Shown piece by piece: positions 8,683 to 49,013 of a DNA stretch of 64,000 nucleotides. The notes under the pieces were generated by a model. That model ran no database searches. It saw only the letters and a program-made list of their open reading frames with translations, and had not been told where the DNA came from. Numbering within the stretch: position 1 is the stretch's first letter; every line of letters starts with the position of its first letter. The position numbers and the translations under genes were made by a program. Origin of the DNA: Basidiobolus meristosporus CBS 931.73 (Eukaryota; Fungi; Basidiobolomycota); the NCBI GenBank assembly GCA_002104905.1, contig MCFE01000292.1, positions 1-64,000 on the forward strand. Reading direction: 5' to 3'.

Positions 8683-9281
8683 ATGTCCAAGGCTGGGATT
8701 TTCAAAGACAACAACCGCTCATCCACCGTAATCATTTGTGACATTGCCACCGTGAATGCGACCACAATGCCAAAGTTAGGGGAACCATGGTTTACTCCAA
8801 GTATTCCAATGGGGGCTTTGGAATTTCTATATCTGTAATTGGGCCTTTGTCTTCATTTTCAGTGCCTAAAAACACCACCATTCAGCGGGCTGTAGGAGGA
8901 TACAGTATGCACCTTGAGTCTAATGACACCTCTGAAGTTTCCATGTTCAAGCTCTAGGATGGTGAACAAACATCAGGGATTTCTAATGTGTTTATGGGTG
9001 AATTTTCGCATCGCTCCGCCATTAAATACAGAAGAGAAGACAAAAAGGTCGTGATGGCAAGCTTCTATTGCTCATCCTTCATGGTGGTTCGCAATGTGAT
9101 GAAGTATGCCTACATGTGCGACATTGCTATCATGTTAGATGGTAGCGGTTCTTCTCAGATATTGGGAGTTGACCCATCCATGGTATCGAGTAGCAATCGA
9201 AAAGGTACATACTATGGGAGCTACTCTAATGAAAGTCGTGCAATATACTCCATGGTTACCGTCAACAGTAACTCATGTTAA
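8683..9281 (+). pseudogene. Phosphodiester glycosidase family pseudogene P1 (decayed paralogue of P8)
   Basis: Starts ATGTCCAAGGCTGGGATTTTCAAAGAC like P8 at 37448. A deletion of roughly 130 bp removes the GINGGFF motif, and there is a TAG at 8955-8957. The 3' part retains SHRSAI, DIAIMLDGSGSSQ and IYSMVTV. Confidence 0.85.
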
Positions 9282-9914
9282 CAGAGTGGTCATTCCCATA
9301 TCCAAGGCAAGATATAAGCTACAAAAATAGATTTAAATCATTGCTATAAATACACATTAACTATTCTGCTTTTAACTAGTATTCCTTCGTATAACAGTTG
9401 CGCGGTTATTTTGTAACTCCGTGCTTAATGTATTCCGCTTCTCCTGTATATTCTCTATACATTGCCTACCTCGCAGGCCTGGGAACTTGGAATCTGTTCA
9501 ATAAGGGTCGTGGGGCATTGTAGTGGCGATATCTGATTGGAATGTGATATTCCTGGACTATATGAATCACAATAAGGGTCAAGCATGAGGTGCCCTATCA
9601 TGATATATGATTGAGGGTGAAACTGTTGTTTTAGGTGTTGTAACTGGACATCCTCAGTCCAATCGCTAATTAACTTTACATAGATTTATGAGCTCCATTC
9701 AGTATTATGATCAAACATTGGCTCAATAGACTATATTTGAAATATTGTATTTCAAGTGAATTTAATATCACGAAGCACATAGAATTTTGTATTTACAATT
9801 GTAGCATTTTGGTGTATTCCGGTTTTAAAAGCGCTATGAGAAAAGTGCAATCATATGATGAGATACTTAAAGTGTGCACCTAATTGAACGTCGCTAGAAC
9901 CCAGCTTTAATTTG

Positions 9915-10065
9915 ATATGGTTACTTTCCAAGCACAAGAGAGGTTGGCGCTTATTGAGAGGTCATTTATTGGCCCATTCACCTCAGTATTTCATATGTCA
10001 AGCTCGGTCAATATTTCAAGCTAACCCTATTTCATGGAGCCTTCCGATACCACTGTATGTAGCTA
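9915..10065 (+). repeat. Dispersed degenerate coding-like repeat (LLPRHKR relic), copy 3
   Basis: Translates WLLSKHKRGWRLLRGHLLAHSPQYF and aligns with copies 1 and 2. Confidence 0.65.
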
Positions 10066-10174
10066 TTTACTCTATATATATTAACGTTTGACAACAACAT
10101 CCGAATGTTCTGTAGATATATGCTGACAATCACATTAAATAGAGCTCCGGGCATTGAGTAAGCATCAAGAAGAG

Positions 10175-10942
10175 ATGTCTACCAAAAATGATCTCAATGA
10201 AGCAAGAGTCAACAAGTTCACTTTTAGTGGTCTTAAAGTAACTGCTATTGTTACAAGTATCGAAGCAGTAGATATCACCAATGTTGGACCCACTACCGTC
10301 GGAAAAAGTAACTTCTGTGGATCAAACGGCTGCTATTTTAATTATTCTACTGGAAACTTGGTAGCGATTGCTTGTACTTCTGGAGGGAAAGCTGTCCGTA
10401 GTGGTGGTGAAGAGCATGCTAACAAATACAAGCGAGGGACCATGATTTGCCGCAAACTAGCCAATGGAGAACTGACCATCTCGGTCTCAGCTATAAATAA
10501 GCTATCTGAATTAGCAATACCTCTCGGTGAGATAAGGTGGGCCATTGGTGGACTCGGGCTTCATTTGGACTCAACTATGACCAATGAAAATTGGATGGAC
10601 CATATTGTACGTACGGAGCATGCAAAGAGCGTTGGCCGAATATATCCTGAGGGCAAGGCAGCTAGAACAGCTATTGGATATAGGAGAGCTGATAACAAAA
10701 TTGTCTTGACCAGCATTGAATCAGCTACGCCCTCGATGGTTCGAGACCTGATGAAGTCATATATTGGATGTGACCTTGGCGTGATGCTTGATGGAGGAGC
10801 TTCATCCCAAATCAAAGGTAAAACTCCAGGGGGTGTTGTTGAACTTGCGGACTATGAGAACCAGGGCAAAGATCAGCATATTTATTCCATGGTTACAGTT
10901 AGCCCTTCCCGTTGGATATCTAATCCTCAAATGCGTAGATAG
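10175..10942 (+). CDS. Phosphodiester glycosidase (NAGPA/DUF2233-like) P2, 255 aa, no signal peptide
   Basis: Motifs GSNGCYF, RGTM, WAIGG, ARTAIG, VMLDGGASSQ and IYSMVTV. The first ATG is at 10175; the ORF track start is a TTG. Confidence 0.8.
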   Translation: MSTKNDLNEARVNKFTFSGLKVTAIVTSIEAVDITNVGPTTVGKSNFCGSNGCYFNYSTGNLVAIACTSGGKAVRSGGEEHANKYKRGTMICRKLANGELTISVSAINKLSELAIPLGEIRWAIGGLGLHLDSTMTNENWMDHIVRTEHAKSVGRIYPEGKAARTAIGYRRADNKIVLTSIESATPSMVRDLMKSYIGCDLGVMLDGGASSQIKGKTPGGVVELADYENQGKDQHIYSMVTVSPSRWISNPQMRR

Positions 10943-12052: not shown

Positions 12053-12552
12053 AAATAAAAGTTTTATGTATAGTTGTAAGCTTGATCTAGTAGGTATATG
12101 TGTTTCTTTATAACTTCCTATTGCAGAAGACAGCTATATTTACACGGTAATTTCAGATAGGGTCATCGTTGCATCTCACTTTCAACTGAACGCATGGGAT
12201 TTATAATCCTTTTTTACTAGTCTAATATTTCATATTCAGGGAGTGTAACCAGGTTGGTATAGGGCGTTATTTGTATCTTTCTATTTCAAGATACAGGTAT
12301 ATATCCCGGTATTATATCAAGCAAGGATACTTTTGAGAAAGGAAGGGCGAACTAGTGATCTATTTTTCTAATATCCAGGCAATATGTTTCTTGGTGCTTT
12401 ATGGCAATAAATGTTGAGTTTATTGAAAAATTATATTTCAAATTTTAATCTATTAGCACGTGAGACCCACCGCTATTGAACATCTAGGCTATATTCGATG
12501 AATTATAAAAAATAAGATGTCAGTCCTCAAAATCATTCCCTTCTGGACTCCA

Positions 12553-14034
12553 ATGGTATACTACACTTGTAACATTGATACTAGTAGCGGACGCCAGGAG
12601 CTTGCAAGATGCCTGTTACCTATGGGTTCCATAATCATTGATGACAAATGGAACTGGATCTCTACTTCCTTAGTTCCCATCGCCCGTACTATACTTGTTG
12701 CCACAGCAACGCTGGCCATATGGCACTTATGGTGGTGGAGAAGATATAGCTCCATGAATCGTCAGACCCATCATGGTAGTAGTTGGGCAATTGGAACTTC
12801 CATGACTCATATGTCAGGGCTCAACTCCACATATATTTGTCTACGAACTGCTATGAAGTATGGCATTGAGAAAGTCACGTCTACATTGCTAATTTTGTTG
12901 GTTGGTACTGGTATAGTGTTGCCACTGGCAAGTATCTACTGGGCTTCCCACGTGTTCCAGAACACAATGGTGCAGTATGAATACAAAACGCATCGACCGT
13001 CTGGAGATAGTATAGTCGAAGCTATCAAAGGCAGAACTGCTCTGGTGTCATCATTTGGACAGGTGACATATGGTGAAAAGCCACTTTTGACGTCTGATGT
13101 ATTTCTTGATATACCAGTCGGAATGGAGTCTGCAACCATTCTGCGACCTCCAGGAATACCTTCATGGTGGAAGGTAGATATAACTCCAAAGGCTTTGGAA
13201 TGCCATGTTGAATTTGGCGACGTACTTGAGTCAAGCTCAAATGTTGAATTCTACGTGAACTATGGTGATTATGCTAACAGCATAGTGGCCGAGTCGTTGA
13301 CCAGTCGTTGTGGCCGAGTCATACCCTCAGTTAACTTCCTTACCAATCAGGATTTTGAAAAACGAAACCCTGAGCTCGCTGCATCTCTCAAGCAAATATT
13401 AGATACAAATCGCGCTCAACAGTGGTGCAAACTGAACTACACTTGCCCTATAGAAACAAAAATTTCCTATGGCAATATAAGTGTCAACAACACCCAGAAA
13501 ATTCAATGGCAGCAAACCTCACTAACCACAACACATGAAAATGATGGTGGCTTGATGAGTCAACTCCAAGACGAGAAAATGAAATCATGGCTTGAGTCTG
13601 ATCAGTGGAAAGAGAAAGCCATCGGTACTATTAAGGAAGCAGCTTCCATCAAGTACAATATTTACAGCAGTCTTGGACAAAACCAGCCAGCTCACCAGGT
13701 CTTAAGCGAGACATTTAATGAGTTCTTCCGAGAAGCGATTCTGCAGAGTTTTGACCAAGTGGAGATTCAATTCAATGGCGCAACTTCGAGGCTGCAATTC
13801 TCCTGGTTAAGTGTGGTACTGTGGGCCATCATTGTTCTGTCGGCAGTCACTACTTTGTCAATCTCTAATATTAATGCAAAGAAGCTACCGCTGCTGAAAG
13901 AAATGCTCGAGTCTTGGGATATAATATCCAAGACTTCCGTTATCAGCGATGGCAACTCCGGCACAAGCGATATTCCACTATACCGTTGGCCAACAGTATA
14001 TGATGATGAGAAAGAGGCCGACTTGATAAATTAG
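12553..14034 (+). CDS. Uncharacterised membrane protein, paralogue M3 (493 aa from MVYYT; ORF opens at 12517)
   Basis: Family motifs are present. TATAAA at 12503 favours the 12553 ATG. Near-identical to M4. Confidence 0.85.
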   Translation: MVYYTCNIDTSSGRQELARCLLPMGSIIIDDKWNWISTSLVPIARTILVATATLAIWHLWWWRRYSSMNRQTHHGSSWAIGTSMTHMSGLNSTYICLRTAMKYGIEKVTSTLLILLVGTGIVLPLASIYWASHVFQNTMVQYEYKTHRPSGDSIVEAIKGRTALVSSFGQVTYGEKPLLTSDVFLDIPVGMESATILRPPGIPSWWKVDITPKALECHVEFGDVLESSSNVEFYVNYGDYANSIVAESLTSRCGRVIPSVNFLTNQDFEKRNPELAASLKQILDTNRAQQWCKLNYTCPIETKISYGNISVNNTQKIQWQQTSLTTTHENDGGLMSQLQDEKMKSWLESDQWKEKAIGTIKEAASIKYNIYSSLGQNQPAHQVLSETFNEFFREAILQSFDQVEIQFNGATSRLQFSWLSVVLWAIIVLSAVTTLSISNINAKKLPLLKEMLESWDIISKTSVISDGNSGTSDIPLYRWPTVYDDEKEADLIN

Positions 14035-16149: not shown

Positions 16150-16400
16150 CAAGTTGGTATTTTGGTGTTGGTGGAATGCATATGTATTGTGCGAATATCG
16201 CTCATCTCATGCTAACAAGAGTGATTTTGTTGTTCATGCATCTGTATCCAATTGGTACCTTGCTTAAGTACAACTGGCTTTCATGGCACCAAAATCTCCC
16301 GAGCCTTCATTTTTGCTATGACTGGCCTTTCTCGGTGCACGCCATACCGAGATGTAAGATCAAACCACCCACCGCTCCACAGACTATTGCTACATAGGAT
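16150..16400 (-). pseudogene. Phosphodiester glycosidase relic P4
   Basis: The minus strand translates GAVGGLILHLGMACTEK..VPIGYRCMNNKITLVSM with stops, matching WAVGGLSLHLDKAYTDK..TAIGYRSTDNKIILVSI of P7. Confidence 0.7.
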
Positions 16401-17136
16401 ATGCGTCTGAATTGAGGACCAGTTTAACATTGCTTTGGCGAACGAAAAAAATAACAAACCATAAATACCAAGCACTAATAGCATCTGCTCACTGCCGCTG
16501 TTGTTGGCTTCATATATGTGCCAACTTCAATTAAACTACCATTCAGTGTAAAACAGTGGGTTAGATTGATTATATTAAGCACTGGCCATACTTTGCTGAA
16601 CCATTATCTATTAATGGTAATATTGGTTTCCCGATGCAGTACTCTACATAAGATGCTAATAGCAATTATTTCTAGTGACAACATAAACATTTTATTGATT
16701 TGTATTCCTTATGCATAAATCCACGATGGGAGCAGTAGTAACAATATCCCTTTTCTTATGCGTTACCTTTCGATCTAAACCGCCAAACACCAAAATATTC
16801 TGAAAATGCAAGTTGACATGCGATACTGTGGATGGCCATCAATACGTATATATGGAATATACAGATTCCCGCCAATATGAGCTGCCTAGTTAGATTTGCC
16901 CTGGTTATTAGAAATATGATCCCGGCTTTGGGCTAGATTAACAAATGAAGCTGATGACAAATACGGAATGTTATATATAGAAGAAATATATGAGAACCAA
17001 AATATAGTTGTCAATGACAATTAGCTACCTTTAATAAAAATATTCACTTCTAATAGAAAATGAATCACATGATATACGATGTGTATCAAGGACAAACCTT
17101 GATACAGTAACAGAACAAACTACTCATAGATTATGA

Positions 17137-18078
17137 TTAGCATCGGCCTCTACTTCTTCTGCCAATAGTAATGGCAGCTGGAATAGGAACCTTTTGCACA
17201 ATCAAAGAGCTCACATCGACCCAGGTATCAGGGTTGACTGTAACCATGGAATAGATAGCGCGCCCTCCTTTGAAGTCCTTCCCCTTCCTTCTAATCTGGG
17301 CCTCAAAGCTGTAGTCCATATGAATTTCGGGTGCTACATTAGATTTGGAAGTATCGGTCTTGACACCAACCCCTGAGATCTGCGAAGAGCCACCACCATC
17401 AAGCATGATCCCAATATCGCATTGGTAGTCATGTTTCATGGCGTTTCTAACTTCCAAGACTGAACAGCTACGAAAACTGGCCAATACCATTTTTCCATCT
17501 GTTCTTCTAAACCCAAGAGCTGATCTATGGGTGCAGCGGCCCCTTCCAACTTCATTGATACTGCATGCATGCTCTTCCACATAAAGCTTCATCATGTATT
17601 CATGATCGGTATAGCTCTTGTCCAGATGCAGGCTGTATCCTCCAATAGCCCATTGTATATTCTCTTCCTCAATCTTGGACTCCTTAATATGTCTAATGAC
17701 TGCCACATCGGCAGTTAATGCTCCATTAGAATCCTGGTGGCAGATCATTGTTCCCCTGGTGTAGTTTGTTGGCTTTGACTTGTCATAGCAAAGACCTTCT
17801 ATTAGCTTTCCATTTTGGTCGCATCTAGAGCTTCCATTACCAGCTTGCTGCTTTTGGTTTTTCTGGCCAGTTTCCCCCTTTGAGAAGTAAGTTATTGACA
17901 ATAACTCCCCAGCTGGTTTACTGAGAGAATTAAAAAATCCACCATTAATTCCATAGCGTCCAGAATTAGCAACTGATTTTTCACCAATGTAGGCAACGCC
18001 CACTGCTTCGATATCGCTGATGATTGCAGTAGAGGAGAGTTCTTTGGCTTCCACGATTCCGGCCTCAGTAGTAGTCAT
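17137..18078 (-). CDS. Phosphodiester glycosidase P3, 313 aa with insertions, no signal peptide
   Basis: Motifs YGINGGFF, RGTM, WAIGGYSLHL, HRSALG, IMLDGGGSSQ and IYSMVTV. TATAAATA at 18121-18128 (minus strand) favours the ATG at 18078 over 18114. Confidence 0.85.
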   Translation of the reverse strand: MTTTEAGIVEAKELSSTAIISDIEAVGVAYIGEKSVANSGRYGINGGFFNSLSKPAGELLSITYFSKGETGQKNQKQQAGNGSSRCDQNGKLIEGLCYDKSKPTNYTRGTMICHQDSNGALTADVAVIRHIKESKIEEENIQWAIGGYSLHLDKSYTDHEYMMKLYVEEHACSINEVGRGRCTHRSALGFRRTDGKMVLASFRSCSVLEVRNAMKHDYQCDIGIMLDGGGSSQISGVGVKTDTSKSNVAPEIHMDYSFEAQIRRKGKDFKGGRAIYSMVTVNPDTWVDVSSLIVQKVPIPAAITIGRRSRGRC

Positions 18079-18568
18079 GTTGCTGTTAGTTCTGCTGCAT
18101 TGGAATGAATGCATGTGGCATATTTATAGTGATATGCTCAAGTTATAGATATCAGCTCCAGAGCTATCCTTTGGACGCAACATAGGATGATGCTACATAG
18201 CACGACTAGTTTTTGACTGGAAGCTGACTAGGATGGCATGAACATACCAATGAAGACCTCAACTAGTATTACTTCTGGTATGACCTGCACTACGCTACTG
18301 ATTTCTTTTACTAGTTTCAAGTAACGACGGAGTCAAACTTTTGATTCCCTTTAGGACTATCTAGTCTACTAACCATCGGATCAACTCTATGCCAATAAAA
18401 AGCCGAATTATTGAAACCTGATATATATCAGATCATGATAATCGCAGTTTTACAAAGTGGTAGTGGAGCTTTGTATTATTACCAGAATATATACAATGTG
18501 GGCCGCGAATTTGAAGAAACAGATATATTCAATGAGCAAGGCTAGAACAGCCAAGTGATGCTAGGCAG

Positions 18569-19431
18569 TGGTTCTGGTGTATTTGTGAGCCTAATATTAT
18601 CACATGGATTACGCAAGTAGATATCGCAGATGTCAGAAGCACGAATGTTACCAGTGTGGGAATCTGTAATGAAGCATATCTATTTTACCAATCAAGACTT
18701 TGTCAAGTTATGGTGCTTTGAGATAGTACCAATAGCACCAAAAAAGCATGGTGCTGTAAGTAGAATGCTACAATATGATGAATCCATGGGTGTGTTACAG
18801 TCAGCAGTAGCTATTTGATAGCGGTAGTGGTAGTAGGGGCAGAACAATATATCAATGGTGCTACTTGAATCAGTTCACTTTGGCAAATGGTTTTTGATCT
18901 AACACTAAATGCAAATTACGAGAAATGCTTGCAACAGGTATGTGATCAAACATTAGATGCTTACCCGATTGAATCCAGGCTGCCACACTTTGACTGGGAC
19001 AAAGCCTAATGATACACGTGATACTAACTCTAATTGGAGGTAACTGGTTTCGACATCAGATTCACTATTTTAACTCGTTGGTTCACCAACAGATTTGACT
19101 GGTTTACCCGAATTCGGTCACTGTAGTCAGGATTTGAGTATTTCAAATTACATGGCATACGACTTATGTGAATACCATCCAGACGCCTACCCACATGAAC
19201 TTCGATTGGCGACTACCATACATGAGCACCACTGCCATAACTGACACACTGGAAAATCCTTAATATCAAGTAAGTTGACAATTGCTTAGATAGGCACATT
19301 CTTGATTGGTCGGCAACTAATTTTCCGATCTGTAGTGGCGATTGGTGGTAACTTGAGGCAATATGGGGCTGTACTCATTCTGGTACACTAAACTCCAAAG
19401 GTTACCTGCTATCAATTGACGATATTTAAAA
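18569..19431. repeat. ~860-bp block upstream of the AAA gene, duplicated at 32456-33318
   Basis: Near-identical direct copy from tggttctggtgtatttgtgagcc to gatatttaaaa; no long ORF. Confidence 0.9.
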
Positions 19432-19574: not shown

Positions 19575-21479
19575 ATGGGATTATCTTGCCACCGAAGTCA
19601 CCTAGTCTACAACTATTCTTACCCTTTTCAAATCACTACAGCAATGACAGTACCAGGCAATGGAATCACTGAAGCATTAGAGCATGGCTCTATCAGCTTA
19701 ATCCACCATAGTAGGACCATAGAAGACGGCAACTCTTTCTTGCAGGCCGATTCTATCAGAAATATATGGGCACCGTTCACTTCTCTGTTTACCAATTCCC
19801 AGGTCAATATGATGCTCATGGCCTGGCTTCCATTCAAGATGGAAAAGTACTTCTCTACTGGCATCATGGCAGTAGATATGTTTATAGTTTCTGCTTTTGC
19901 CGCGGGGATTGTTGCATTATTCAATTTCCTGGGATATTTTGCAGTATCAGCATCTAAGTATCAGTCAAAGGCACAGACGGACTCGATAATTGTGCAGGTT
20001 GAGCCCAAGTTTATTGGCCTTTACGATGAGCTAGAACACAATGAGCATCATAAAGCCTTATCCTGGATAATATCGGAGAAAAGCAAGCATCTACCCAAAG
20101 GACTATTTCTGATGGTGCCTGAGGTTGATCGCTTCGAAACACACAATGAAGATGAGGACTTGAGAATTCCACTTTTCAATATTCTACCGCAAGATAATGA
20201 AACACTATATATGCAGCATAAAAGTGATGTGTATAAAGTTTACTTTAAGGAGACCTCTGACAATGACTATCAGAAGCCTATAGAAGAAGAAGAAAACGAA
20301 GGGAGTACCAACTCCAGTAGCAAGCAGAGAAGAAACATCAGAGCTCTACCATCGATAATGGTCGAACTTTGCCATGAATTTACCACAGATTCGAATTCCA
20401 AGGCCCTGCCTCAAACAGCTAAGGGAGATAAACAAAATCAGATAGCCGATGATGGAATTACCGACATGAACAAAATCTTGGATTTCATAGTGACAGTTAC
20501 AAAAGCGTATCTTATGGTCCAAAAAAATGAACAGGTCCGGTCACGTTATGAGCGGGGATCTTGCGGATGGAGTGCTGTACAAACACTGATGCTATCCCGA
20601 GGGTTGGATGCTGTAAGTCTGGAAAGATGCAACGAAGACTTACTAAAGCTAGACCTCGAAGCATTCTTAAACGACAAAGATTTTTATCAGCAACTTGGTC
20701 TTCCATATCGTCGTGGTATTCTTCTATATGGAAGGCCTGGAACTGGGAAGACATCACTAGTGAATGCGATTGCAAGTGAATTAAGCCGTGATCTGTACAT
20801 GATCAACCTGAAGGAAATCGACAGTGATGCTTCATTGAACGCCATCTTCAACTCCATCCCGCCTAATCAGATCATTGTTGTGGAGGATTGCGACACTCAA
20901 AGCAGGGTTTTGCATCCACGCAGGCAAATCAATTCCATCGAGACTACCGACACGGTTAGCACAAACATTTTCTCGGAGGGCTTTGGAGCTTTGGGCAAAG
21001 GTGGAGGTATAGATGGCTCATTTTCTTTGGCGACCTTTCTTGCCAACCTTGATGGCCATTGTCTTGCTCCGGGAAACATTATTATTTTGACAACCAATCA
21101 CCCCGAAATGCTCGATCCTGCCATTGTGCGACCGGGCCGAATGGATTTGAAGATCGAAATGGGCTACTGCTCACATTATCAAATCCAAAAGATGTACTCC
21201 TCAGTCATGAGAAATGCCGAAGCACAGATTAATCAGGCATTCCTAGATGGGTACGTCCCCGAAGGCTTACTTCCTCCTTGTGAGGTGATGACCTGTTTCG
21301 TCCTGTACCGCCGCACACCGAAGGTCATACCCGAGATGCTGAGTCAGTTGGTCAGCAAATTCAAAACTACCGATGCCCCTAGTGCAGAGAATCTTCTGAC
21401 TGAAGCTGTATTGCCTGAGAAAACTGATCTTGGCTCCAAAATACCTGCGATGGACTCGGGCTATAGCTCAGACTCGTAA
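19575..21479 (+). CDS. BCS1-like AAA+ ATPase (intronless; start may be 19644)
   Basis: YRRGILLYGRPGTGKT (Walker A), IIVVEDCD (Walker B), FLANLDG, IILTTNHPEMLDPAIVRPGRMD (second region of homology) and an N-terminal TM segment. Confidence 0.9.
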   Translation: MGLSCHRSHLVYNYSYPFQITTAMTVPGNGITEALEHGSISLIHHSRTIEDGNSFLQADSIRNIWAPFTSLFTNSQVNMMLMAWLPFKMEKYFSTGIMAVDMFIVSAFAAGIVALFNFLGYFAVSASKYQSKAQTDSIIVQVEPKFIGLYDELEHNEHHKALSWIISEKSKHLPKGLFLMVPEVDRFETHNEDEDLRIPLFNILPQDNETLYMQHKSDVYKVYFKETSDNDYQKPIEEEENEGSTNSSSKQRRNIRALPSIMVELCHEFTTDSNSKALPQTAKGDKQNQIADDGITDMNKILDFIVTVTKAYLMVQKNEQVRSRYERGSCGWSAVQTLMLSRGLDAVSLERCNEDLLKLDLEAFLNDKDFYQQLGLPYRRGILLYGRPGTGKTSLVNAIASELSRDLYMINLKEIDSDASLNAIFNSIPPNQIIVVEDCDTQSRVLHPRRQINSIETTDTVSTNIFSEGFGALGKGGGIDGSFSLATFLANLDGHCLAPGNIIILTTNHPEMLDPAIVRPGRMDLKIEMGYCSHYQIQKMYSSVMRNAEAQINQAFLDGYVPEGLLPPCEVMTCFVLYRRTPKVIPEMLSQLVSKFKTTDAPSAENLLTEAVLPEKTDLGSKIPAMDSGYSSDS

Positions 21480-21695
21480 GAGATTGTTGATAAAATCAAA
21501 TGTAAAGCAGCGATTTGGTGAACTATAGAAATACTGATGGCCTCTAACTCGATTCTATGGAGGAATAATTGATCCAATAAATGTCATATATTACTTTATT
21601 TTCACTTTGTAAATAGTGACTGTCGGCACTGCATCACATCACACGAAGCTCAACAGTAAATGGAGTTCTAACGCACGGCAGTTCATCTGTGTTCC

Positions 21696-30489: not shown

Positions 30490-30690
30490 CGCCCCAAAAA
30501 CCAGCAAGAATATCAACACTTACAGCAGTTTTTTATTTGATTTGAGAGGAATTCGAACCGCCAAGTATGACACCAATTTTGCTCCCAATGTGGGTTTTCA
30601 CCAATCCTCTCGCTTGGCCAGGAGTCGCCAATGCTATGCTGACAAGAGTAATTTTGTTGTCTGTGTTTCTGGATTCAATTGCTGTACCAA
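30490..30690 (-). pseudogene. Phosphodiester glycosidase fragment P5 (P7-like 3' half)
   Basis: TAIESRNTDNKITLVSIALATPGQARGLVKTHIGSKIGVILGGSNSSQIK aligns with P7; the 5' half is missing. Confidence 0.8.
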
Positions 30691-36404: not shown

Positions 36405-37447
36405 GGGGATTGCGCTTGTCTAGAACACAGTTGGCCATGGCAGTATTTATAGTATGAGCAGTGACCCATACGCTACATTCACTGTATACTGTGGGGTGTT
36501 CACAATGCGGATTACAGATCCAATACCCGTATTTGATGTAGCTACTTCCCAAGCACAAGAGGGCTTGTAGTTTGGTGTGCAAACTTGCATTGATTCAATT
36601 TCTCATACCCACCAGATATCAAGCGTAACCAGGGTTTAGAATCGGCTATTTGTCTTGCAAGATCAAAAACTTAAATATTGCAGCAATCATCTCATTCGAA
36701 TCCAGACTTTTTACTCATAGCTAATGTGATCTAGATTGACTTGGACCAAGTAACTGGGCTGCTGCAATAATGTTATTGGTCAACTAAAATAGTAAGCTAG
36801 TACTTTGTTGCTAACATGACATAGAATTTGGCAATCCAAATGCTATTTATATGTTAATTAAGCTAGGACCTGTGAAACATATAGCGATTTAAGAGTATTC
36901 TTCTAATAGTATGATGTAGTCATGAATGTGGGATTTTCCAATCTATGTCCCCAAAATATGTTGGTTCTTAAGTGAGCAAATACTTGAATCACCTGAGAGG
37001 CGCACTAATCATATTGCTACGAGTTGTGCATTCCAGAAAGGTTGATAATGGCACAAGGATCCGAAGCCAAGATATTGTATGAAGTTGCAAGAATAGTGCT
37101 TAAAGCAACTTCTAAATACTTGGCCTAATTAATCCGATCTAGGTACATCCTGGAGTCATAATAAGAATGCGCATAATCTAATATGCATTATAACTTGTTT
37201 GCTATCAAAAGGTGGAACCCTCTTGAAATTTTATTTTCATATATCTTCGGGCCATGAGCCATGCCTAGATTACGTCCAAGAGAAAAACTAGATTAATTCA
37301 ATGGAAGTAAGGGTGAACCAATACAATATTTCGTAAATGGCACATTTCATGAAATGAATACTCCCAATGCAAAACTTGGTTGGTTGATAAAAAATATATA
37401 TATAGTGGACTGCCACCTGAGTAGTCTTCAGATACTCCAGTTGAAAC

Positions 37448-38227
37448 ATGCCTAAGGCCGGAATTTTTAAAGATGACAATCATTCATCCACTGTAATCAT
37501 TTGTGACATTGATACGGTGAATGTCGCCTCTGTAGGTCCCAAAACAGTTGCCAGCTCCAAACTGCATGGAATAAACGGCGGATTCTTTTACCGGGGAAAT
37601 CTACTGTCTATAGCTGCTAGCACTGGAGGAAAGAGCGTCCACAATGGAGGTGACAAAAATGCTAAAAAAAGGGGAACCATGGTTTGCTACAAATTTTCTA
37701 ATGGCAGCTTTGGTGTCGACGTGCCCGTAATCGGGTCATTGTCCGAATTTACAGTTCCTGAGAAAAGTACCATTGAATGGGCTGTTGGAGGATACAGTCT
37801 GCATCTTGAGTCCACTGACGCCTCAGACGCATTCATATCCAAACTTCAGAAGGATGAGCAAACAGATAATATATCAAATGTGTTCAAAGGTGGCTTTTCG
37901 CATCGCTCTGCCATTGGCTATAGAAGACAAGACGGGAAGATCGTGATGGCCAGCTTCTATTGTTCGTCGGTTCTTGAGGTTCGCAATGTGATGAAGAATG
38001 CTTACATGTGTGATATTGCTATCATGTTGGATGGTGGTGGCTCTTCCCAGATATCTGGAATTGCTATTGTCCCCGGTAGCAATAAGCAGAGCGTATACCA
38101 TGGAAACTACTCCAAGGGAAGCCGTGCAATATACTCTATGGTCACCGTCACTGCCAGCACCTGGGGAGATGTTAGCTTATTGGTCAATACCACCACCAAG
38201 AGTTACACTAAAAGTCGAACATGTTAA
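37448..38227 (+). CDS. Phosphodiester glycosidase P8, 259 aa
   Basis: Motifs HGINGGFF, RGTM, WAVGGYSLHL, SHRSAIG, AIMLDGGGSSQ and IYSMVTV. Confidence 0.85.
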   Translation: MPKAGIFKDDNHSSTVIICDIDTVNVASVGPKTVASSKLHGINGGFFYRGNLLSIAASTGGKSVHNGGDKNAKKRGTMVCYKFSNGSFGVDVPVIGSLSEFTVPEKSTIEWAVGGYSLHLESTDASDAFISKLQKDEQTDNISNVFKGGFSHRSAIGYRRQDGKIVMASFYCSSVLEVRNVMKNAYMCDIAIMLDGGGSSQISGIAIVPGSNKQSVYHGNYSKGSRAIYSMVTVTASTWGDVSLLVNTTTKSYTKSRTC

Positions 38228-40353: not shown

Positions 40354-41112
40354 ATATACTGAACAAGGATAAAATCACCATGAAATGGGCAATACAGCAT
40401 CAGAACAGATGTTTCGGAACAATTTTTAACTAACATGGAGAATGGATTATTTGTTCATTTGCGTCCTGTTGATTGCATCATTAGGAGTTCCATTTTGTCA
40501 TTACACTGATTGTTACTGGGATAAATCGAGAGATTTTCCATGTGCCATATACCTGGTCTTCGATGAAATGTCAGTTGTACAGCATAGCGCTTCAATAACT
40601 CTTAGTGTGATTTAAATTCCAGTAGCTAGCTTCGATGCTATACCTCCACGTTTCTTCGAGGGTTAACGGTGTGGTAGAAGATTTGTTTAAGCAAGCATTG
40701 GTAATCAACTTTTCCATAAATAATCTACATAATACTCAAGTCTCCTTTATTTCTGATTTATTCAAAATGCATTTTAAAAGGCTATCAGTATTATATTGCA
40801 TATCGCATTCTATCGTCTATATCCGAGCGATGATACTTTTTGTTCATGCGATGAGCATTCGTTATGGACAATAGTTTGGAGTTCGATTTTACACTACTTG
40901 GTTGTTGGACCAAGATGCATAACCGATATAGTTGAGCCATGTGTTACTAAGAATATCGCACACGAATCCTAAAGCTGAAATCTTTGTTCTTTGTATTTAT
41001 GGTGGCGCTTAGTAATGGTCCAGTGATCAAGTGTTCGGACAAATTGGTTGAGTAAGATATGATAGCTTTATTAAAGTCAAAATCCGTGAAGTCATTTTCG
41101 CAAAAATCACCG

Positions 41113-41874
41113 TTACTTGCGAACATTGGTCGAGTTTACCCAGCGGGACGGGGTGACAGTTACCATCGAGTATATGCCTGGGCCTTGTTTAAGTTGAGTT
41201 ACGTTTCCGAAACCAGCGAGGACATCCTGACCTCCGGCAGTCTTTCCTTTGATCTGGGAGGAATTCGATCCATCAAGCATGACACCAATTTTACAGCCAA
41301 TGTATGTTTTCATTAGGCTTCTCACTTGGCCAGGAGTTGCCGACATTATGCTGACAAGAATAATTTTGTTGTCTGTGCTTCTGTACCCAATTGCTGTCCT
41401 TGCTGAAGTAGAATTGGCTCCCATGGCGCCAACGCGACCCGCATGTTCACTCGCAGTGATATCATCTAGCCACTCTTTATCGGTGTACGCCTTATCCAGA
41501 TGAAGACTCAAGCCGCCTACTGCCCATTGAATACTCTCCTTCTGGTAGCCATTAAGGTTGGATATCACATCAGTAGAGAGGAACAGATTCCCGCTGGAGC
41601 TTTTGGTGCATATCATGGTTCCCCTGCTGAAATCCCCGTAGTTATGAGCATCTCCGCCGTTTCTTACGGGCGCACCTCCAGCTTTGCAGACAATTGCCAC
41701 CAGGTCCTTGGTAGGCGAGTCCCGATTGAAGTAGCCTCCATTGCAGCCATAGTAGGATGAAGCGTAGACATTAGTGTTGCCCACATCAGCGACGTCAATG
41801 GTGGGGACATCAGCAACAATTGCTGTGACACTGATGCCTTGATAGGTAAATTGGTTGACTCGAGCTTCAGACAT
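41113..41874 (-). CDS. Phosphodiester glycosidase P9 (protein identical to P7)
   Basis: Part of a ~1.07 kb block present three times (about 35545-36610, 41000-42080 and 48140-49205). Confidence 0.85.
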   Translation of the reverse strand: MSEARVNQFTYQGISVTAIVADVPTIDVADVGNTNVYASSYYGCNGGYFNRDSPTKDLVAIVCKAGGAPVRNGGDAHNYGDFSRGTMICTKSSSGNLFLSTDVISNLNGYQKESIQWAVGGLSLHLDKAYTDKEWLDDITASEHAGRVGAMGANSTSARTAIGYRSTDNKIILVSIMSATPGQVRSLMKTYIGCKIGVMLDGSNSSQIKGKTAGGQDVLAGFGNVTQLKQGPGIYSMVTVTPSRWVNSTNVRK

Positions 41875-42829
41875 GGGGATTGCGCTTGTCTAGAACACAG
41901 TTGGCCATGGCAGTATTTATAGTATGAGCAGTGACCCATACGCTACATTCACTGTATACTGTGGGGTGTTCACAATGCGGATTACAGATCCAACACCCGT
42001 ATTTGATGTAGCTACTTCCCAAGCACAAGAGGGCTTGTAGTTTGGTGTGCAAACTTGCATTGATTCGCTTTCTCATAACCACAAGATATCAAGCGGGGTC
42101 AAAGCTGGGGATACGTTGTGTTACAGTGCCTCACAATACCTTCGGAATATGATGAATAATTCAAGCTATCTACTTTTGGGATGAACGTGGATTTTGAGTA
42201 CACATATCAAAACTTGGTGATGAATGATATACATAATGTGCAATTTAAGATACGATACTCAGCATTTGATACTGATTACAGCTATTTCCAGTTTTAACAT
42301 CCATATCTCTTTTGCAACCAGATATGTCATGCAATGAAATGCATTCTATGAGGAGTTACTAGTTTCATTAAATATGTACTAGTTCAATCTAATACAAAGG
42401 ACGAATCGTGGAGCATCCTATCAAGATTAGTACAGGAATTTATTTAAAATTGCTCACCAACTCCTCCAAGCTCTTTTGGCCAACCCAAGATCGGATTAGC
42501 TGATACATCCATCTGTAATTATTGCTAGGTGGATCAGAAGTACCACAGATATAATAGTGATGGAAAACATCCTTTCTGGTATTGCTATTCCGATCCTGCT
42601 AAACAGTGGTTTTGAGATATCACCGGATGAATCATAAGCACCAACTGTATCAAAATATTTTTACATGTAATGCATACTAGTTCTAATAGTACCTCACACA
42701 AGCCATGCAATTGGGAAATCAAAACCATGGCTGAGTCACAGATATCACTGTAATGCTTAACATGCTGTTCCGTGCGCCATAATTCAAAACTTCCCAATCC
42801 CAATTTTGGGAAGTGGTATGTTGTCAGTG

Positions 42830-44500
42830 TCGAGGATAACCTCCGCATCAGGTTATCTTCACAATGTTGAACATTCAAGCCCATTTGCCTCAAACAGGCT
42901 TAGGAATCTGGTACTACCTGGCCAAGCCGTCTTACAGCCAAACCTGTAGAGCGTGATCGGGGTGGGACTTCTACCATCTACTGTCTGTATTCATTCACTC
43001 AAGATCCAGGTTTGTATCATACAGTCTGGATTTGACACCCTTGTGACACATGGTTCGATTACTTGATGCTGCGATCGCTAGATCCTAGATGTTCGCGTAT
43101 GATGAGTTCTGGTTGAAATCATGGCACTAATGTGCACATTATTCCCTTTTCATTGATGCACTAGACTGCACTCCCTGCAAAACAGGAAAGCCAATCCTGC
43201 GAATACGTACAGATGGCGTTCTCACAAATGCTGAGTTAAGCTTATTTCGAAAGCAGTCACCTGCCTACCAGCATTGCCATGCCATTGAGAAGAGTAGATA
43301 TTTCAAGGTATGTTTATTTGGGTTACGTTTTCGAGCAAGTGTCGATTAGTCAATTGCACAACGAATCATGGCTTAGGGGCCGTTTGAAGAAGCCCACTCT
43401 GTGTGCCAGCTATACAATCCGATTTGACTCTCATTCTAGCATTATCGGAGTTGGCTTCCTTGGCGGTGGCTGATTTGCCGATCTCTCTGCCTCTTGCGTT
43501 GTTGAAGAGATCCATGGATGAGGCTGCTGCACTATTTTGCCCAAACACTTCGTGAGCATCACCGACTTCCTTTGCCTGAGACTCACCAATACTAATGGTC
43601 ATCAACGCACTCCAATAGCAGTGACGGAACGCATCAGCTTTACCATTTACGTCGGAACCGACTGGGAATGTTTTATCGTTTATCAATGCCTGGGTGGTGT
43701 CCAAAGCCGTACTGGTGTCACGGGCAACCGAAATGCAGTCGAAGATGCCAACTTGGATAGCGCAGTTCCATCCTTCAGCCCACGATTTTTTATGCAACGG
43801 AGCCGCTGACGCCCAAGGAAGGGTGATTAGTGCAAGAGCGCCGATTAGAGTGAATGACTTCATTGTGTTTACTGCCGGAAGTTAGAAGAAGGCTGTGTTA
43901 GTGAGGCTTTACTCCGTTCTTCGGTCCATTTATAGCTGATAGGCAGAAAAGAATTGTCAGACAGTATCAGGATCCTCTTTATTGGTGTTGGATCGCTTAT
44001 GTTGGGCCAATATGTTCTGTGAAACGATGGCATTTGCAATGCGAACTCTGATACCCCAGAGAGGGACCCTTTGTTGACTGAGCTGCATGTCGGGTGGTAG
44101 AATTCGGAAAACATATCAGAGCTGCCCTGCAAGCTGGTGGGAAGGTCTTTCGAAGTAGTCAATTACTAGATACTGAGTCATTGCTAGTATCCATACCTTA
44201 GTTTACCCCCTTGATGTATCACAATTATGGAGATTGGTGGCAACGACTGCGTTCATTGTAGAACATTCGAAGCCTTATTGTGATGTACCGAAAATAGATT
44301 GAAGATTGTGGTCATTCATACTCTTTATAGTCAGTGTGCACTATTTGTGAAGCATCCAATGAAGGCTTTACTTGAACCGTCATCCGAGGGGGCTTTCGTG
44401 ATCTGAGATTCGGCTCCAGCCATGACCTGTATTCTACTCAGCCCTTGTTTCTTAGCTTGAGAACTTTCAGGATATAGCAAGAAATACCGGAGATGCCAAG
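42830..44500. repeat. ~1.65 kb segmental duplication carrying the DUF6973-like gene (second copy about 51516-53165)
   Basis: Near-identical direct repeat starting at gtgtcgaggataacctccgc. Confidence 0.9.
43366..43863 (-). CDS. Small secreted DUF6973-like protein D1 (165 aa)
   Basis: Signal peptide, dibasic KK, then DAFRHCYWSALM..DAHE..MDLFNNARGREIG, which matches the DUF6973 motif pattern as I recall it. Four Cys. Confidence 0.75.
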   Translation of the reverse strand: MKSFTLIGALALITLPWASAAPLHKKSWAEGWNCAIQVGIFDCISVARDTSTALDTTQALINDKTFPVGSDVNGKADAFRHCYWSALMTISIGESQAKEVGDAHEVFGQNSAAASSMDLFNNARGREIGKSATAKEANSDNARMRVKSDCIAGTQSGLLQTAPKP

Positions 44501-45661: not shown

Positions 45662-47911
45662 CCCAATCGGACCATTTGGTCCGATTGTATTTAAATTATT
45701 TTGACCTCATAGCAAGGATATATGAAGTCTAAATGAAGTTTATGAAATTTCTCTGGTATACACTTTGTGCTGGTATTTTAATTTTTTCAAAATGGTTGCA
45801 AATACTTTGTCTTATATTACCTTTACTGAAGCAACTTTTGGCAAATTTTAATCGGACCAAATGGTCTAACACTTCATTGATGAATAATGGGTATGGCTTT
45901 AAGCAATTATATTTCAAACATTTAATGGCCAATCCAACTAACTGCGAAGAATTATTGAGCATTATTTGTTTTTTCATATACCACCTTCAAGTGCCTGGTA
46001 TAGCAGTCCTTACACATTGGGTGGCCAGGGTTGCAACTGCATGAAAACTCAACCTTAGTGCTTGTAACATGAGCGGCAGTACAAGTTTTGCAAGCTAATC
46101 TACGGCGCTTTGAGCCATAACCTTTACTCATCGACAGGTAAGTGTGATTTTCATCACTTCTGAGTTGCCTCTGACTACCCAAGGGCCCCTTGATGTCTGA
46201 ACCGGCCAAATTCTTACAATATTGCAAGAAATTGTATGCTAAAATATCCTTGAAAGAGAAATGAGATACGCCACACTTTTGATAAGAAAATGTACAATAA
46301 GTGCTATAGGCATTGGCGTCACAGATACCCAGGATGAAGCCGTAGAAACGCATCTCCCATCTTTCTGTACATATAACATCATGATAAGATGTCAAATTAT
46401 CTTGAAGGTTATTAGCAGCATCAACCGAACCTACAAATATAGTAAATGGAGCACATGTTGTTTCTTCAAGACAGGATTCTACAATACAAGTTGCCAACAC
46501 TGGCAACAATATTGGTGGTGGGCATACCACATGGCCAGTAGCAGCGTTTAGTCACTTGCATAATGGAATACAGACCAAGTTCAGCCAGCATCATTGTCAT
46601 ATTTGGGGATCCGAACCAAGAGTCAGCAATAACGGTACGGCCAGTACCAAACCAAGGCTTGACTAATCGCTTGACAGTGGAAGTCAACTTGGACATACCA
46701 GGATCATTGTCATATTCCTTCTGTAACCAATCACTCACTGTATCTATTCTCAGGATACAAGCAGTGTGATGGTCTGCTAAAGTCTTGAACTCCTGTCCGA
46801 TGGGATGCGGCTTCCTTGGGACTTTCTTAACATTGGGCAAACCAGCTCCTAACCATTGATTCATTGATTCGTCAATGACTAAATACTTGCAGGGCTCTAA
46901 ACAAGTTTTCATGTGCTCATTAAAGGCGTCAATAGTTGATCTAATTTGATAAAGAGCATCGATTTCTTGATGTTCTCGGGAAGGGATTTCAAGAACGTGC
47001 ATTTTCAGAATCTCTTTAAATCTTCTATACGACATATATTCCGTAAAGTCAATGTTCATTAAGAAATGAGAAGAGCCTTGCTTCCAGTAAGCTTTTTTGT
47101 CGGAATGATTGATTAATGCAATCCACATCATGTACTCGGCAAATGTAATGTCAGTCCATGGGCCAATGCTAGTTGCATAAGTATTAATCCTCCAAACGAT
47201 AGTGCGAAAGTGATCTAAAGGAAGGAAGAACAAGAAATAATCCAGCGGTGAGGCATTTCTAGCATTTTTCATATTTAACCAAGCTTTCAAGGAGGTAAAA
47301 CCATCAGCTGGCCCACTTGTACGGGAATCAATATATACTTCCCCAGTTATCCAGGTGTCTGCTGCAGTAAGGTCAATTTCATCTTCCTCCTGCTCCTCTT
47401 CTTGGATTGCATCCTCCAATAGGTCTTTAGTAACAATACTCTCGGTAGTATTAGCAGTTGCAGGTTCAATGTTTCCCAAGGTATCATTACTGTTAGTCTT
47501 GATATACTTTAAACAGTTTTGTGAAAGAGTCAATGTAATCCCCGGTACCAGATCCAAAATGACATCATATTCCAAATTGCCGTTGACTGTTGAGCGTGCA
47601 GTGGTAACTCCCTTGAAGCTCAAACCAGGTGTATTCCAGTCAAAACGCAGAGATAAAAGTCGTTTGACTTCCTTATGTTTGATAAATCGCTTGGATACTG
47701 ATACACGCACATTAACATCAAGATGTTTACTGGCAGGAGGCATGGTTTAAGTCTTAAGAAAAGATAAAACGAATATGACGAATTATCAAAACAACTCCAA
47801 AAAATAAATATTCAGATTCTTGTTTATCAGAATATGATATGAAATAAACAAAGTAAGACACCCATCCAGAAAAAACAATTGTATTTAATTAGACCATTTG
47901 GTCCAATTTGG
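45662..47911 (-). mobile_element. piggyBac DNA transposon with a disrupted transposase
   Basis: ORF 46466-47743 carries VIDESM, RKPHPIG and IADSWF (D1, D2). ORF 45952-46530, in another frame, carries GSVDAANN (D3), RWEMRF..NAY and a C-terminal CxxC..CxC..CxxC..H domain. The ends match at 16/21 as inverted repeats, and the left end begins CCC after TTAG. Confidence 0.85.
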
Positions 47912-48251
47912 ACCAGCCGAATAGCACTCCTACATCTCATGTCGCATTCTATCATTAGTTTCTCGGCGATAATATTTCCTAGTCATGCATTGCGCATTCT
48001 ATACGGACAATACTTCGGCGTCTGGTTTCACACTACTTGGTTGTTGGACCAAGATGCATAACCGATATAGTTGGGCCATGTGTTACTAAGAATATCGCAC
48101 ACGAATCCTAAAGCTGAAATCTTTGTTCTTTGTATTTATGGTGGCGCTTAGTAATGGTCCAGTGATCAAGTGTTCCGACAAATGGGTTGAGTAAGATATG
48201 ATAGCTTTATTAAAGTCAAAATCCGTGAAGTCATTTTCGCAAAAATCACCG

Positions 48252-49013
48252 TTACTTGCGAACATTGGTCGAGTTTACCCAGCGGGACGGGGTGACAGTT
48301 ACCATCGAGTATATGCCTGGGCCTTGTTTAAGTTGAGTTACGTTTCCGAAACCAGCGAGGACATCCTGACCTCCGGCAGTCTTTCCTTTGATCTGGGAGG
48401 AATTCGATCCATCAAGCATGACACCAATTTTACAGCCAATGTATGTTTTCATTAGGCTTCTCACTTGGCCAGGAGTTGCCGACATTATGCTGACAAGAAT
48501 AATTTTGTTGTCTGTGCTTCTGTACCCAATTGCTGTCCTTGCTGAAGTAGAATTGGCTCCCATGGCGCCAACGCGACCCGCATGTTCACTCACAGTGATA
48601 TCATCTAGCCACTCTTTATCGGTGTACGCCTTATCCAGATGAAGACTCAAGCCGCCTACTGCCCATTGAATACTCTCCTTCTGGTAGCCATTAAGGTTGG
48701 ATATCACATCAGTAGAGAGGAACAGATTCCCGCTGGAGCTTTTGGTGCATATCATGGTTCCCCTGCTGAAATCCCCGTAGTTATGCGCATCTCCGCCGTT
48801 TCTTACGGGCGCACCTCCAGCTTTGCAGACAATTGCCACCAGGTCCTTGGTAGGCGAGTCCCGATTGAAGTAGCCTCCATTGCAGCCATAGTAGGATGAA
48901 GCGTAGACATTAGTGTTGCCCACATCAGCGACGTCAATGGTGGGGACATCAGCAACAATTGCTGTGACACTGATGCCTTGATAGGTAAATTGGTTGACTC
49001 GAGCTTCAGACAT
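48252..49013 (-). CDS. Phosphodiester glycosidase P10 (one A-to-V change versus P7/P9)
   Basis: Third copy of the triplicated block. Confidence 0.85.
   Translation of the reverse strand: MSEARVNQFTYQGISVTAIVADVPTIDVADVGNTNVYASSYYGCNGGYFNRDSPTKDLVAIVCKAGGAPVRNGGDAHNYGDFSRGTMICTKSSSGNLFLSTDVISNLNGYQKESIQWAVGGLSLHLDKAYTDKEWLDDITVSEHAGRVGAMGANSTSARTAIGYRSTDNKIILVSIMSATPGQVRSLMKTYIGCKIGVMLDGSNSSQIKGKTAGGQDVLAGFGNVTQLKQGPGIYSMVTVTPSRWVNSTNVRK

Follow-up and report, generated by a model that had tools for sequence, protein, structure and literature searches.

The window analyzed here is the 64,000-nucleotide stretch at positions 1 to 64,000 (forward strand) of contig MCFE01000292.1 from the fungus Basidiobolus meristosporus CBS 931.73 (GenBank assembly GCA_002104905.1), eukaryotic DNA with a GC content of ~40%. 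A six-frame listing of open reading frames (ORFs) and tblastn searches with the family identified exactly ten loci of the NAGPA/PF09992 phosphodiester-glycosidase family, seven intact and intronless and three relics with stop codons, which bears out the ten-member composition proposed in an earlier reading of the letters alone (hereafter, the sequence-only reading). The shared motifs listed in that reading, NG(G/C)(F/Y)F, RGTM, WAxGG, (R/Q)(T/S)A(I/L)G and MLDGxxSSQ, were all found. The loci, assigned to the types described below and with Arg316 numbered as in human NAGPA, are as follows.

8748-9275, plus strand: relic P1, a type II-a-like NAGPA pseudogene, upstream member of a tandem II-then-I pair with 10175-10942
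10175-10942, plus strand: type I-a NAGPA-like gene, intact, 255 residues from the first ATG; PF09992 31.9 bits; loop DGGAS; without the Arg316 equivalent
16187-16411, minus strand: relic P4, a type I-like fragment, heavily decayed, lying downstream in its tandem pair with 17137-18114
17137-18114, minus strand: type II-b NAGPA gene, intact, 325 residues, or 313 from Met13; PF09992 27.8 bits; DGGGS and Arg kept
30404-30685, minus strand: relic P5, the C-terminal fragment of a type I-b-like gene, lying downstream in its tandem pair with 31518-32240
31518-32240, minus strand: type II-c NAGPA gene, intact, 240 residues from the first ATG; DGGGS and Arg kept
35643-36404, minus strand: type I-b NAGPA-like gene, intact, 253 residues; PF09992 29.8 bits; loop DGSNS; Pro at the Arg316 position
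37448-38227, plus strand: type II-a NAGPA gene, intact, 259 residues; PF09992 31.3 bits; DGGGS and Arg226, 31 residues past the Asp
41113-41874, minus strand: type I-b recent duplicate, 253 residues; same protein as the 35643 copy, the coding sequences differing at one synonymous site
48252-49013, minus strand: type I-b recent duplicate, 253 residues; two synonymous differences and one non-synonymous (one amino-acid) difference from the 35643 copy

The three relics are decayed to different degrees. P1 is 63% identical to residues 65-238 of the 37448 copy; its N-terminal third is missing, it contains one in-frame stop, its WAxGG motif reads RAVGG (Trp to Arg) and its loop reads DGSGS. P4 matches type I-b residues 118-183 in tblastn (E 8e-5) and carries at least three in-frame stops. 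P5 retains the C-terminal 94 residues alone, 61% identical to residues 160-253 of the I-b copy, with one in-frame stop and the catalytic Asp replaced by Gly (ILGGSNSS). All seven remaining ORFs are intact, as the sequence-only reading had stated. However, they represent five distinct lineages rather than seven because the three 253-residue copies, 99.6-100% identical in protein sequence, are recent segmental duplicates over 1.1 kb: block 35513-36625 recurs at 40983-42095 and block 35513-36602 at 48122-49211, each with 98.6% DNA identity.

The loci are organized in pairs. In three head-to-tail pairs a type II gene comes first and a type I gene follows ~0.9 kb downstream, one member having decayed in each, and a fourth pair is divergent and intact.

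8748-10942, plus strand: tandem pair, relic II-a and I-a
18114-16187, minus strand: tandem pair, II-b and relic I
32240-30404, minus strand: tandem pair, II-c and relic I-b
35643-36404 (minus strand) and 37448-38227 (plus strand): divergent intact pair, I-b and II-a

The other two I-b copies (41113 and 48252) are solo recent duplicates. The three II-then-I tandems together with the divergent pair suggest an ancestral two-gene unit in which type II preceded type I.

Assignment to the NAGPA/DUF2233 family, already proposed in the sequence-only reading, is supported by domain, profile and fold comparisons. All seven intact ORFs exceed the Pfam gathering threshold for PF09992 (25 bits), with scores of 27.8-42.3 bits and hence a modest margin; the 31518-32240 gene reaches 42.3 bits and covers profile positions 3-153 of 169. 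Against the PDB, the family profile matches guinea-pig NAGPA crystal structures at E 1e-4, and profile A2, led by the 37448 protein and built from type II and bacterial relatives, matches NAGPA structures at E 7e-12. An AlphaFold2 model of the 35643 copy, of moderate confidence (predicted local distance difference test, pLDDT, 69; predicted template modelling score, pTM, 0.77), retrieves the DUF2233 structure 3ohg (E 8e-9) and NAGPA in Foldseek with probability 1.00. VIA-align superposes this model on NAGPA chain 6pku_A with Z 19.9 and a root-mean-square deviation of 2.9 Å over 216 residues, and on 3ohg with Z 16.8. Because model residues 2-243 fit 6pku_A residues 74-327, which is the whole catalytic core, these "minimal" proteins are, as modelled, a complete catalytic core and nothing more. 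The genes are genuine fungal members of the NAGPA/DUF2233 phosphodiester-glycosidase fold. A vertebrate-type uncovering-enzyme orthologue was rejected, since the ORFs are core-only (240-325 residues) and have no hydrophobic N- or C-terminal segment. NCBIfam holds no model for any component discussed here.

In a maximum-likelihood tree of 60 sequences (LG+C20+F+G4, unrooted), the fungal clade divides into type I (support 100/99) and type II (100/99), so that the diverged subtypes noticed earlier do exist but amount to two well-supported clades rather than several. Type I comprises the window copies 10175, 35643, 41113 and 48252 and the B. meristosporus proteins P0002 and P0004; type II comprises 17137, 31518 and 37448 and four B. 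ranarum proteins. The two types differ in their active sites. In human NAGPA, the DGGGS loop was described as strictly invariant in phosphodiester glycosidases, activity is lost on substitution D286A, G288A, G289A or S290A, and the leaving phosphate is held by R316 and the N-acetylglucosamine (GlcNAc) by E226 and T227 (PMC13474241). DGGGS and the Arg are both present in all seven type II proteins, and neither is found in the five type I proteins, whose loops read DGSNS (35643, 41113 and 48252) or DGGAS (10175) and whose Arg is replaced by Pro or Gln. The Asp-to-Arg spacing is 31 residues in type II and 30 in the human enzyme, and the end-points of the structural alignment (model residue 243 with chain residue 327) put R316 on the type I Pro/Gln column; on these grounds the type II Arg would be the R316 equivalent. 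Similarly, a Glu that is invariant across the family aligns within one position of E226 in hidden Markov model (HMM) alignments, an approximate mapping, like those of T227 and T260, and would be its equivalent.

Despite the lost glycine loop and Arg, type I is under purifying selection, the ratio of non-synonymous to synonymous substitution rates (dN/dS) being 0.14 (dS 0.91) between type I-b 35643 and P0002 and 0.20 (dS 0.55) between type I-a 10175 and P0004. Loop variation is also common outside the fungus: variant loops, among them DSNPS, DGSGS, DGDGS, DGGSS and DGGKS, replace DGGGS in 35 of 68 leaderless bacterial or metagenomic relatives, and DGGGS is therefore not invariant in this leaderless subfamily. 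Loss of the Arg accompanies 13 of the 35 variant loops and 4 of the 33 others (naive Fisher p 0.025, with relatedness ignored). The bacterial sister clade of the fungal proteins is of the variant-loop kind. Because variant loops are so common in the bacterial relatives and in the sister clade, type I may be re-specialised rather than dead.

Two type II lineages have acquired a further feature. The II-a and II-b proteins (37448 and 17137, with their relatives P0006, P0008 and P0009) carry a C-terminal extension of 20-25 residues, rich in basic residues, that is missing from type I and from the bacterial relatives. The two window copies and the two B. ranarum orthologues end in Cys (…SRTC, …RGRC, …SRSC and …KYC), and P0009 ends in KDKCGGKK; this C-terminal Cys may be a site of lipidation or of a disulphide.

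The relatives of these genes are bacterial. An exhaustive HMMER search of 1.84 billion representatives returned 244 relatives, nearly all of 215-300 residues and aligned end to end; profile matches to the bacterial-type relatives cover positions 1-248 in proteins of 232-267 residues at E 1e-30 to 1e-47. Among 30 relatives looked up, the named non-fungal ones are all Paenibacillus entries annotated "phosphodiester glycosidase family protein", and Paenibacillaceae account for 11 of the 12 confirmed loci in a scan of 185,579 prokaryotic species genomes. The fungal proteins are 30-35% identical to any bacterial protein, and a word search found B. meristosporus CBS 931.73 and B. ranarum proteins with 37-78% identity to the window copies. 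The tree unites all Basidiobolus sequences in a single clade (99/94) and places beside it, as sister (95/98), a clade that includes Paenibacillus sp. N3.4; both lie inside further Paenibacillus-rich clades. Together, these sequence relationships indicate that the fungal copies descend from a single horizontal transfer of a short leaderless gene of Paenibacillus type. The tree being unrooted, bacterium to fungus is the parsimonious direction because a single eukaryotic genus sits inside a broad bacterial radiation. Vertical eukaryotic descent was rejected, the fungal clade being nested in Paenibacillus-type sequences and vertebrate NAGPA being matched by profile at only E 1e-4 to 1e-11. The family is unusual in fungi, as had been noted from the letters alone, and a single transfer fits the published picture of Basidiobolus, for which 806 candidates for horizontal gene transfer (HGT) were reported, 112 of them from Firmicutes and most of them intronless (PMC7466969).

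A phage source was also considered. PHROGs gave no match for the fungal proteins and weak matches of unknown function for the bacterial ones, and the bacterial-type relative P0015 had no tblastn match in 50,697 phage records; an origin from a prophage endolysin is therefore not supported.

The fungal proteins have no N-terminal signal-like or transmembrane segment, confirming the sequence-only reading on this point, with the signal peptide of a neighbouring DUF6973 protein (listed below) as positive control. Moderate hydrophobicity is confined to residues ~14-22, a conserved β-strand preceded by 13 polar residues. A hydrophobic leader is likewise missing in 65 of 68 bacterial relatives of the same length class. 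Furthermore, fungal and bacterial proteins have in common an N-terminus of the form M-S/T-x-A-K/R, aligned from residue 2-3, and in the AlphaFold2 model this conserved segment is the first β-strand of the fold. Because the bacterial relatives are leaderless with the same N-terminus, the leaderless state is inherited from the bacterial donors and not a fungal novelty.

The annotated starts agree with this picture. In-frame stops lie 1-13 codons upstream of the intact NAGPA ATGs, the relatives in B. meristosporus and B. ranarum have public gene models that begin at the same Met, and a TATAAAT-like box stands 12-50 nucleotides before each intact ATG (CTATAAATAC before 36404, 41874 and 49013), so close that the 5′ untranslated regions are presumably very short. 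For these reasons, and because a splice would fall on a protein start that is already conserved, an upstream exon supplying a signal peptide is unlikely. In the 17137-18114 gene, just ~12 nucleotides separate the box TATAAATA from the first ATG, and Met13 matches the start of the B. ranarum orthologue; Met13 is therefore the likelier start and probably the real one, giving 313 residues, the largest length stated in the sequence-only reading.

In the bacteria, the leaderless gene is embedded in a recurrent neighbourhood. A lipoprotein of NTF2 fold, 160-200 residues long and with a lipobox, adjoins the NAGPA gene in almost every bacterial locus, usually in convergent orientation; its sequence shows a conserved YIDESKYEGDEL-like motif and, at the C-terminus, W-K-I..ID, and modelling (pLDDT 80) gives it an NTF2-like fold. 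At least nine independent bacterial loci also encode, close by, a mini-protein of 52-80 residues with one N-terminal transmembrane helix and a coiled tail; it resembles YvrJ and the BhlA holin family, and precomputed YvrJ matches exist for two copies. A Sigma70_r4 and HTH_16 pair flanks the gene in five bacterial loci, the arrangement of the Bacillus YvrI/YvrHa split sigma factor. The components are also duplicated together: in P. yanchengensis, a cassette of mini-protein, NAGPA and lipoprotein is tandemly repeated (L001 5294-7323 and 9668-11698), with a third, truncated copy on another contig (L015), and in P. roseus the NAGPA and lipoprotein genes are tandemly repeated (L010 358-1432 and 2094-3533). 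A conserved 191-residue protein (MPHKLSS…YGC.ICDLAMF…), with no Pfam match on record, lies beside the NAGPA and lipoprotein genes in both sister-clade loci (L018 10139-10714, minus strand; L019 11231-11806, plus strand) and could be a further component of the cassette.

This donor neighbourhood argues for export by a route other than Sec and for action on the envelope, outside the cell, since the neighbours of the bacterial gene are a lipoprotein anchored in the membrane and a mini-protein resembling a holin. It bears directly on the proposal, made in the sequence-only reading, that signal-less proteins are cytosolic or non-classically secreted and hence have a different substrate. With the ~250-residue leaderless form ancestral, the step from a missing signal to a cytosolic protein and hence to a different substrate is not supported, and a cytosolic substrate no longer follows from the missing signal peptide. 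The corresponding alternative, in which the fungal proteins are cytosolic enzymes acting on the fungus's own sugar-phosphates (UDP-GlcNAc, GlcNAc-1-P or dolichol-PP-GlcNAc) and tuning the precursor pools of chitin and glycans, is in our view unlikely. The lack of any signal peptide or transmembrane segment would suit it, as would the absence of a donor-type export partner from the window. Furthermore, human NAGPA turns over the minimal analogue GlcNAc-1-P (PMC13474241), and the basic, eukaryote-specific II-a/II-b tail ending in Cys could tether the protein to the cytosolic face of a membrane. However, the leaderless state was inherited rather than evolved for a cytosolic role, and the donor genes are linked to an extracytoplasmic lipoprotein. 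Nor would a housekeeping metabolic enzyme be expected to occur in one fungal genus only, to gain and lose copies rapidly, to leave pseudogenes and to have lost catalytic residues in half of its copies; letting UDP-GlcNAc be freely hydrolysed in the cytosol would also be wasteful.

The neighbours of the NAGPA loci in the window include the following features.

1777-3258, minus strand: T family, multi-pass membrane protein of ~500 residues, no Pfam match
12517-14034, plus strand: T family, as above
19575-21479, plus strand: BCS1-like AAA ATPase, 634 residues; PF00004 1.9e-17
24758-26275, plus strand: T family, as above
27171-28832, minus strand: T family, as above
33352-33744, plus strand: truncated AAA duplicate, the last 130 residues, in a duplicated block
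43366-43863, minus strand: secreted DUF6973 protein with a clear signal peptide; PF22322 2.8e-23
46466-47743, minus strand: piggyBac-type transposase ORF, 425 residues, between duplicated blocks; PF13843 DDE_Tnp_1_7 1.1e-32
52052-52549, minus strand: second, near-identical DUF6973 copy, in a duplicated 1.7-kb block of 98% identity

The T family is always interleaved with NAGPA genes, both in the window and on two further B. meristosporus contigs (L020 8719-10200 and 12081-13640; L021 2376-3893). Its language-model neighbours are fungal DUF3176-type proteins, a lead that comes from features only. The S family, three copies of ~200 residues, is also interleaved with NAGPA genes and gave no PDB sequence match and no atlas match. 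The mixture of NAGPA, T, S and AAA genes recurs on the two further contigs at 70-78% protein identity, and these are probably diverged paralogous blocks. Within the window, blocks 18569-19431 and 32456-33318, and blocks 21064-22292 and 33327-34557, are 98-99.8% identical, so that the middle of the AAA gene was deleted in the second copy. The AFRHxxW…AHE…NN.GR region of the DUF6973 protein has weak similarity (E 0.1) to the Bacteroides fragilis type VI secretion system effector 9uu0. A 192-residue ORF at 45952-46530 (minus strand) overlaps the transposase and looks like its Cys-rich C-terminal part in another frame; the two ORFs are probably a single frameshifted element. An anti-phage defence role was considered and not retained, as PADLOC gave no match for the NAGPA, lipoprotein, YvrJ-like or T proteins and only a generic IetA/TRIP13 match for the AAA ATPase.

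These surroundings, together with the findings above, bear on two further alternatives. Bacterial contamination, or a mis-assembled bacterial fragment, might be suspected from intronless genes whose closest non-fungal relatives are in Paenibacillus. However, eukaryotic genes and transposons alternate with the copies along a single 102-kb contig whose GC content is a uniform ~40%, and the neighbours include the piggyBac-type transposase, the BCS1-like AAA ATPase and fungal-type (DUF3176-like) membrane proteins. Identity to any bacterial protein does not exceed 30-35%, and the sequences form a deep fungal-only clade with several sub-lineages common to Basidiobolus assemblies. TATA-like boxes lie upstream, and the bacterial neighbour genes are missing from the window. 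The eukaryotic neighbours, the boxes and the low bacterial identity together exclude contamination with near certainty.

The second alternative holds that the genes are drifting passengers, an old bacterial acquisition without a present function, multiplied by segmental duplications within an accessory region full of repeats and transposons and now gradually decaying. The three pseudogenes among ten copies, the three near-identical block duplicates beside the piggyBac-type transposase and the absence of catalytic residues from type I would all be expected under such drift. Nevertheless, the type I pairs show dN/dS of 0.14-0.20 over dS of 0.55-0.91, each of the five lineages has a counterpart with an intact ORF at 74-80% identity in B. 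meristosporus or B. ranarum, the core motifs are invariant across the family, and promoter-like TATA boxes are kept. We therefore consider the passenger explanation very unlikely.

We propose instead the following scheme. We are confident of its observed part, namely that these are fungal genes of NAGPA fold, that they came by one transfer of Paenibacillus type, that they duplicated into types I and II, and that the resulting pair was copied several times. After the transfer, the gene duplicated to give type II, with the Asp, the GGG phosphate loop, the Ser, the putative Arg316 equivalent and the Glu near E226, and type I; the tandem II-then-I pair, probably ancestral, was then copied several times, taking T, S-family and AAA neighbours with it, and most pairs have since seen one of their two genes decay. 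Type II may be an active retaining glycosidase that releases a GlcNAc-like sugar from a sugar-1-phosphodiester, and type I a non-catalytic or re-specialised partner, perhaps pairing with type II. We regard this division into an active type II and an inactive type I as moderately probable. NAGPA enzymes work as dimers, which makes a I/II partnership a reasonable idea by analogy. The likeliest substrates would be sugar-1-phosphate linkages in bacterial wall glycopolymers of the teichoic-acid type, a tentative assignment about which we are rather doubtful, and the role would be to attack or digest bacteria by a gut and dung fungus that is surrounded by them. The missing signal peptide would be a legacy of a donor system that exported the protein by a holin-like route. 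For an antibacterial or bacteria-digesting role there is mild support by analogy from the DUF6973 neighbour and from the Lipocone analysis, in which NAGPA domains occur with TelC in large predicted conflict proteins of spore-forming Bacillota (Lipocone preprint, 10.1101/2025.01.14.632903). Taking its shown and conjectural parts together, we lean slightly towards this explanation as a whole.

Several points weigh against it. On the donor side, the picture of a cassette with a leaderless wall-active enzyme, holin-like export and a membrane-anchored protective or regulatory lipoprotein is drawn from gene neighbourhood only, and the YvrJ Pfam scores of two other mini-proteins, scanned here, fall below the family cut-off (19 versus 29.5 bits). 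The donor partners (lipoprotein, holin-like protein and sigma pair) are not in the fungal window, where no tblastn match to any of 13 lipoproteins and 7 YvrJ-like proteins was better than E 0.7; the fungal proteins may accordingly act in the cytosol. Literature searches found no characterised member of the leaderless NAGPA subfamily, bacterial or fungal, and no study of such leaderless proteins or of what YvrJ does. As to the active sites, the equivalences of the type II Arg to R316 and of the invariant Glu to E226 come from spacing and alignment, not from residue-level superposition, and, since about half of the bacterial relatives vary, a changed loop may mean activity on other substrates instead of none. 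The I/II partnership is conjectural, and three of the ten copies are pseudogenes, part of the array decaying.

A bolder version would have the array be a domesticated and amplified bacterial weapon: a leaderless Paenibacillus "lysin/bacteriocin" cassette, stripped of its holin-like exporter and immunity lipoprotein, turned into a heterodimer of type II enzyme and type I pseudo-enzyme that leaves the cell by an unconventional exit and, with DUF6973 and the S family, strips wall teichoic acids from Gram-positive gut bacteria. We consider this decidedly unlikely; if true, it would make YvrJ-type mini-proteins exporters of leaderless wall enzymes in Bacillota.

Three findings go beyond the sequence-only reading: the genes came from bacteria, half of the copies no longer have the catalytic loop and Arg, and types II and I stand in tandem, II first. 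We rate the cluster as a variant of a known enzyme family that arrived by well-resolved HGT. It offers a clean, datable transfer from bacterium to fungus, after which the family expanded, in a fungus for which extensive HGT was already suspected, with the donor group, the recipient clade and the changes after transfer all visible: eukaryotic promoters, added tails and the split into canonical and degenerate active sites. It also draws attention to a leaderless Paenibacillus NAGPA subfamily that is uncharacterised and whose neighbourhood suggests non-Sec export and a protective lipoprotein, which gives YvrJ-type mini-proteins a testable role. Furthermore, the DGGGS loop, recently called strictly invariant, varies in about half of this subfamily. 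If the antibacterial reading is true, the proteins are candidate tools against teichoic-acid-bearing bacteria and an example of a gut fungus arming itself; if it is false, they are an ordinary lineage-specific HGT family.

Among known systems, the vertebrate uncovering enzyme NAGPA (6PKU, 6PKY, 6PKI, 6U11; human cryo-electron microscopy structure, PMC13474241) has the same catalytic-core fold as the fungal proteins (Z 18-20 over ~216 residues). NGGFF, R/D-GT, SARTAIG-like and LDGGGS motifs are common to both, and the Asp, GGG loop, Ser and Arg at the R316 spacing recur in fungal type II. Nevertheless, identity is only ~17%, and the fungal proteins have no signal peptide, furin-cleaved propeptide, EGF-like stalk or membrane anchor; type I in addition is without the "invariant" DGGGS loop and the Arg. 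The vertebrate and fungal genes are not orthologous, as the latter branch inside the bacterial radiation. Exported bacterial DUF2233 proteins (BACOVA_00430, 3OHG; BPSS2145, 6OZD; Slr0280, 5H3K) also have the fold of the fungal model (Z 16-19.5) but carry signal peptides and/or extra domains, whereas the fungal proteins are the bare leaderless core. The predicted Bacillota conflict proteins that combine prok-TelC and NAGPA, with or without NlpC/P60 (10.1101/2025.01.14.632903), come from the same broad donor group and place the NAGPA domain in a predicted anti-envelope role in conflict between organisms; these are giant, secreted and multi-domain, whereas the fungal domain stands alone, leaderless and with no fusion partners seen. 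A fourth comparison is with the uncharacterised leaderless Paenibacillus proteins of ~230-270 residues (WP_377770156, WP_374019834 and WP_147950393), which align end to end with the fungal proteins at 30-35% identity, with the same length and the same N-terminus, and among which the fungal clade is nested. The clade that is sister to the fungal one likewise shows variant loops (DSNPS, DGNPS and others) and lacks the Arg in places. The Paenibacillus genes are accompanied by the NTF2-fold lipoprotein, the YvrJ/BhlA-like mini-protein and often the split sigma factor, none of which was found in the fungal window, whereas the fungus adds eukaryotic promoters, I/II gene pairs and the II-a/II-b C-terminal tails.

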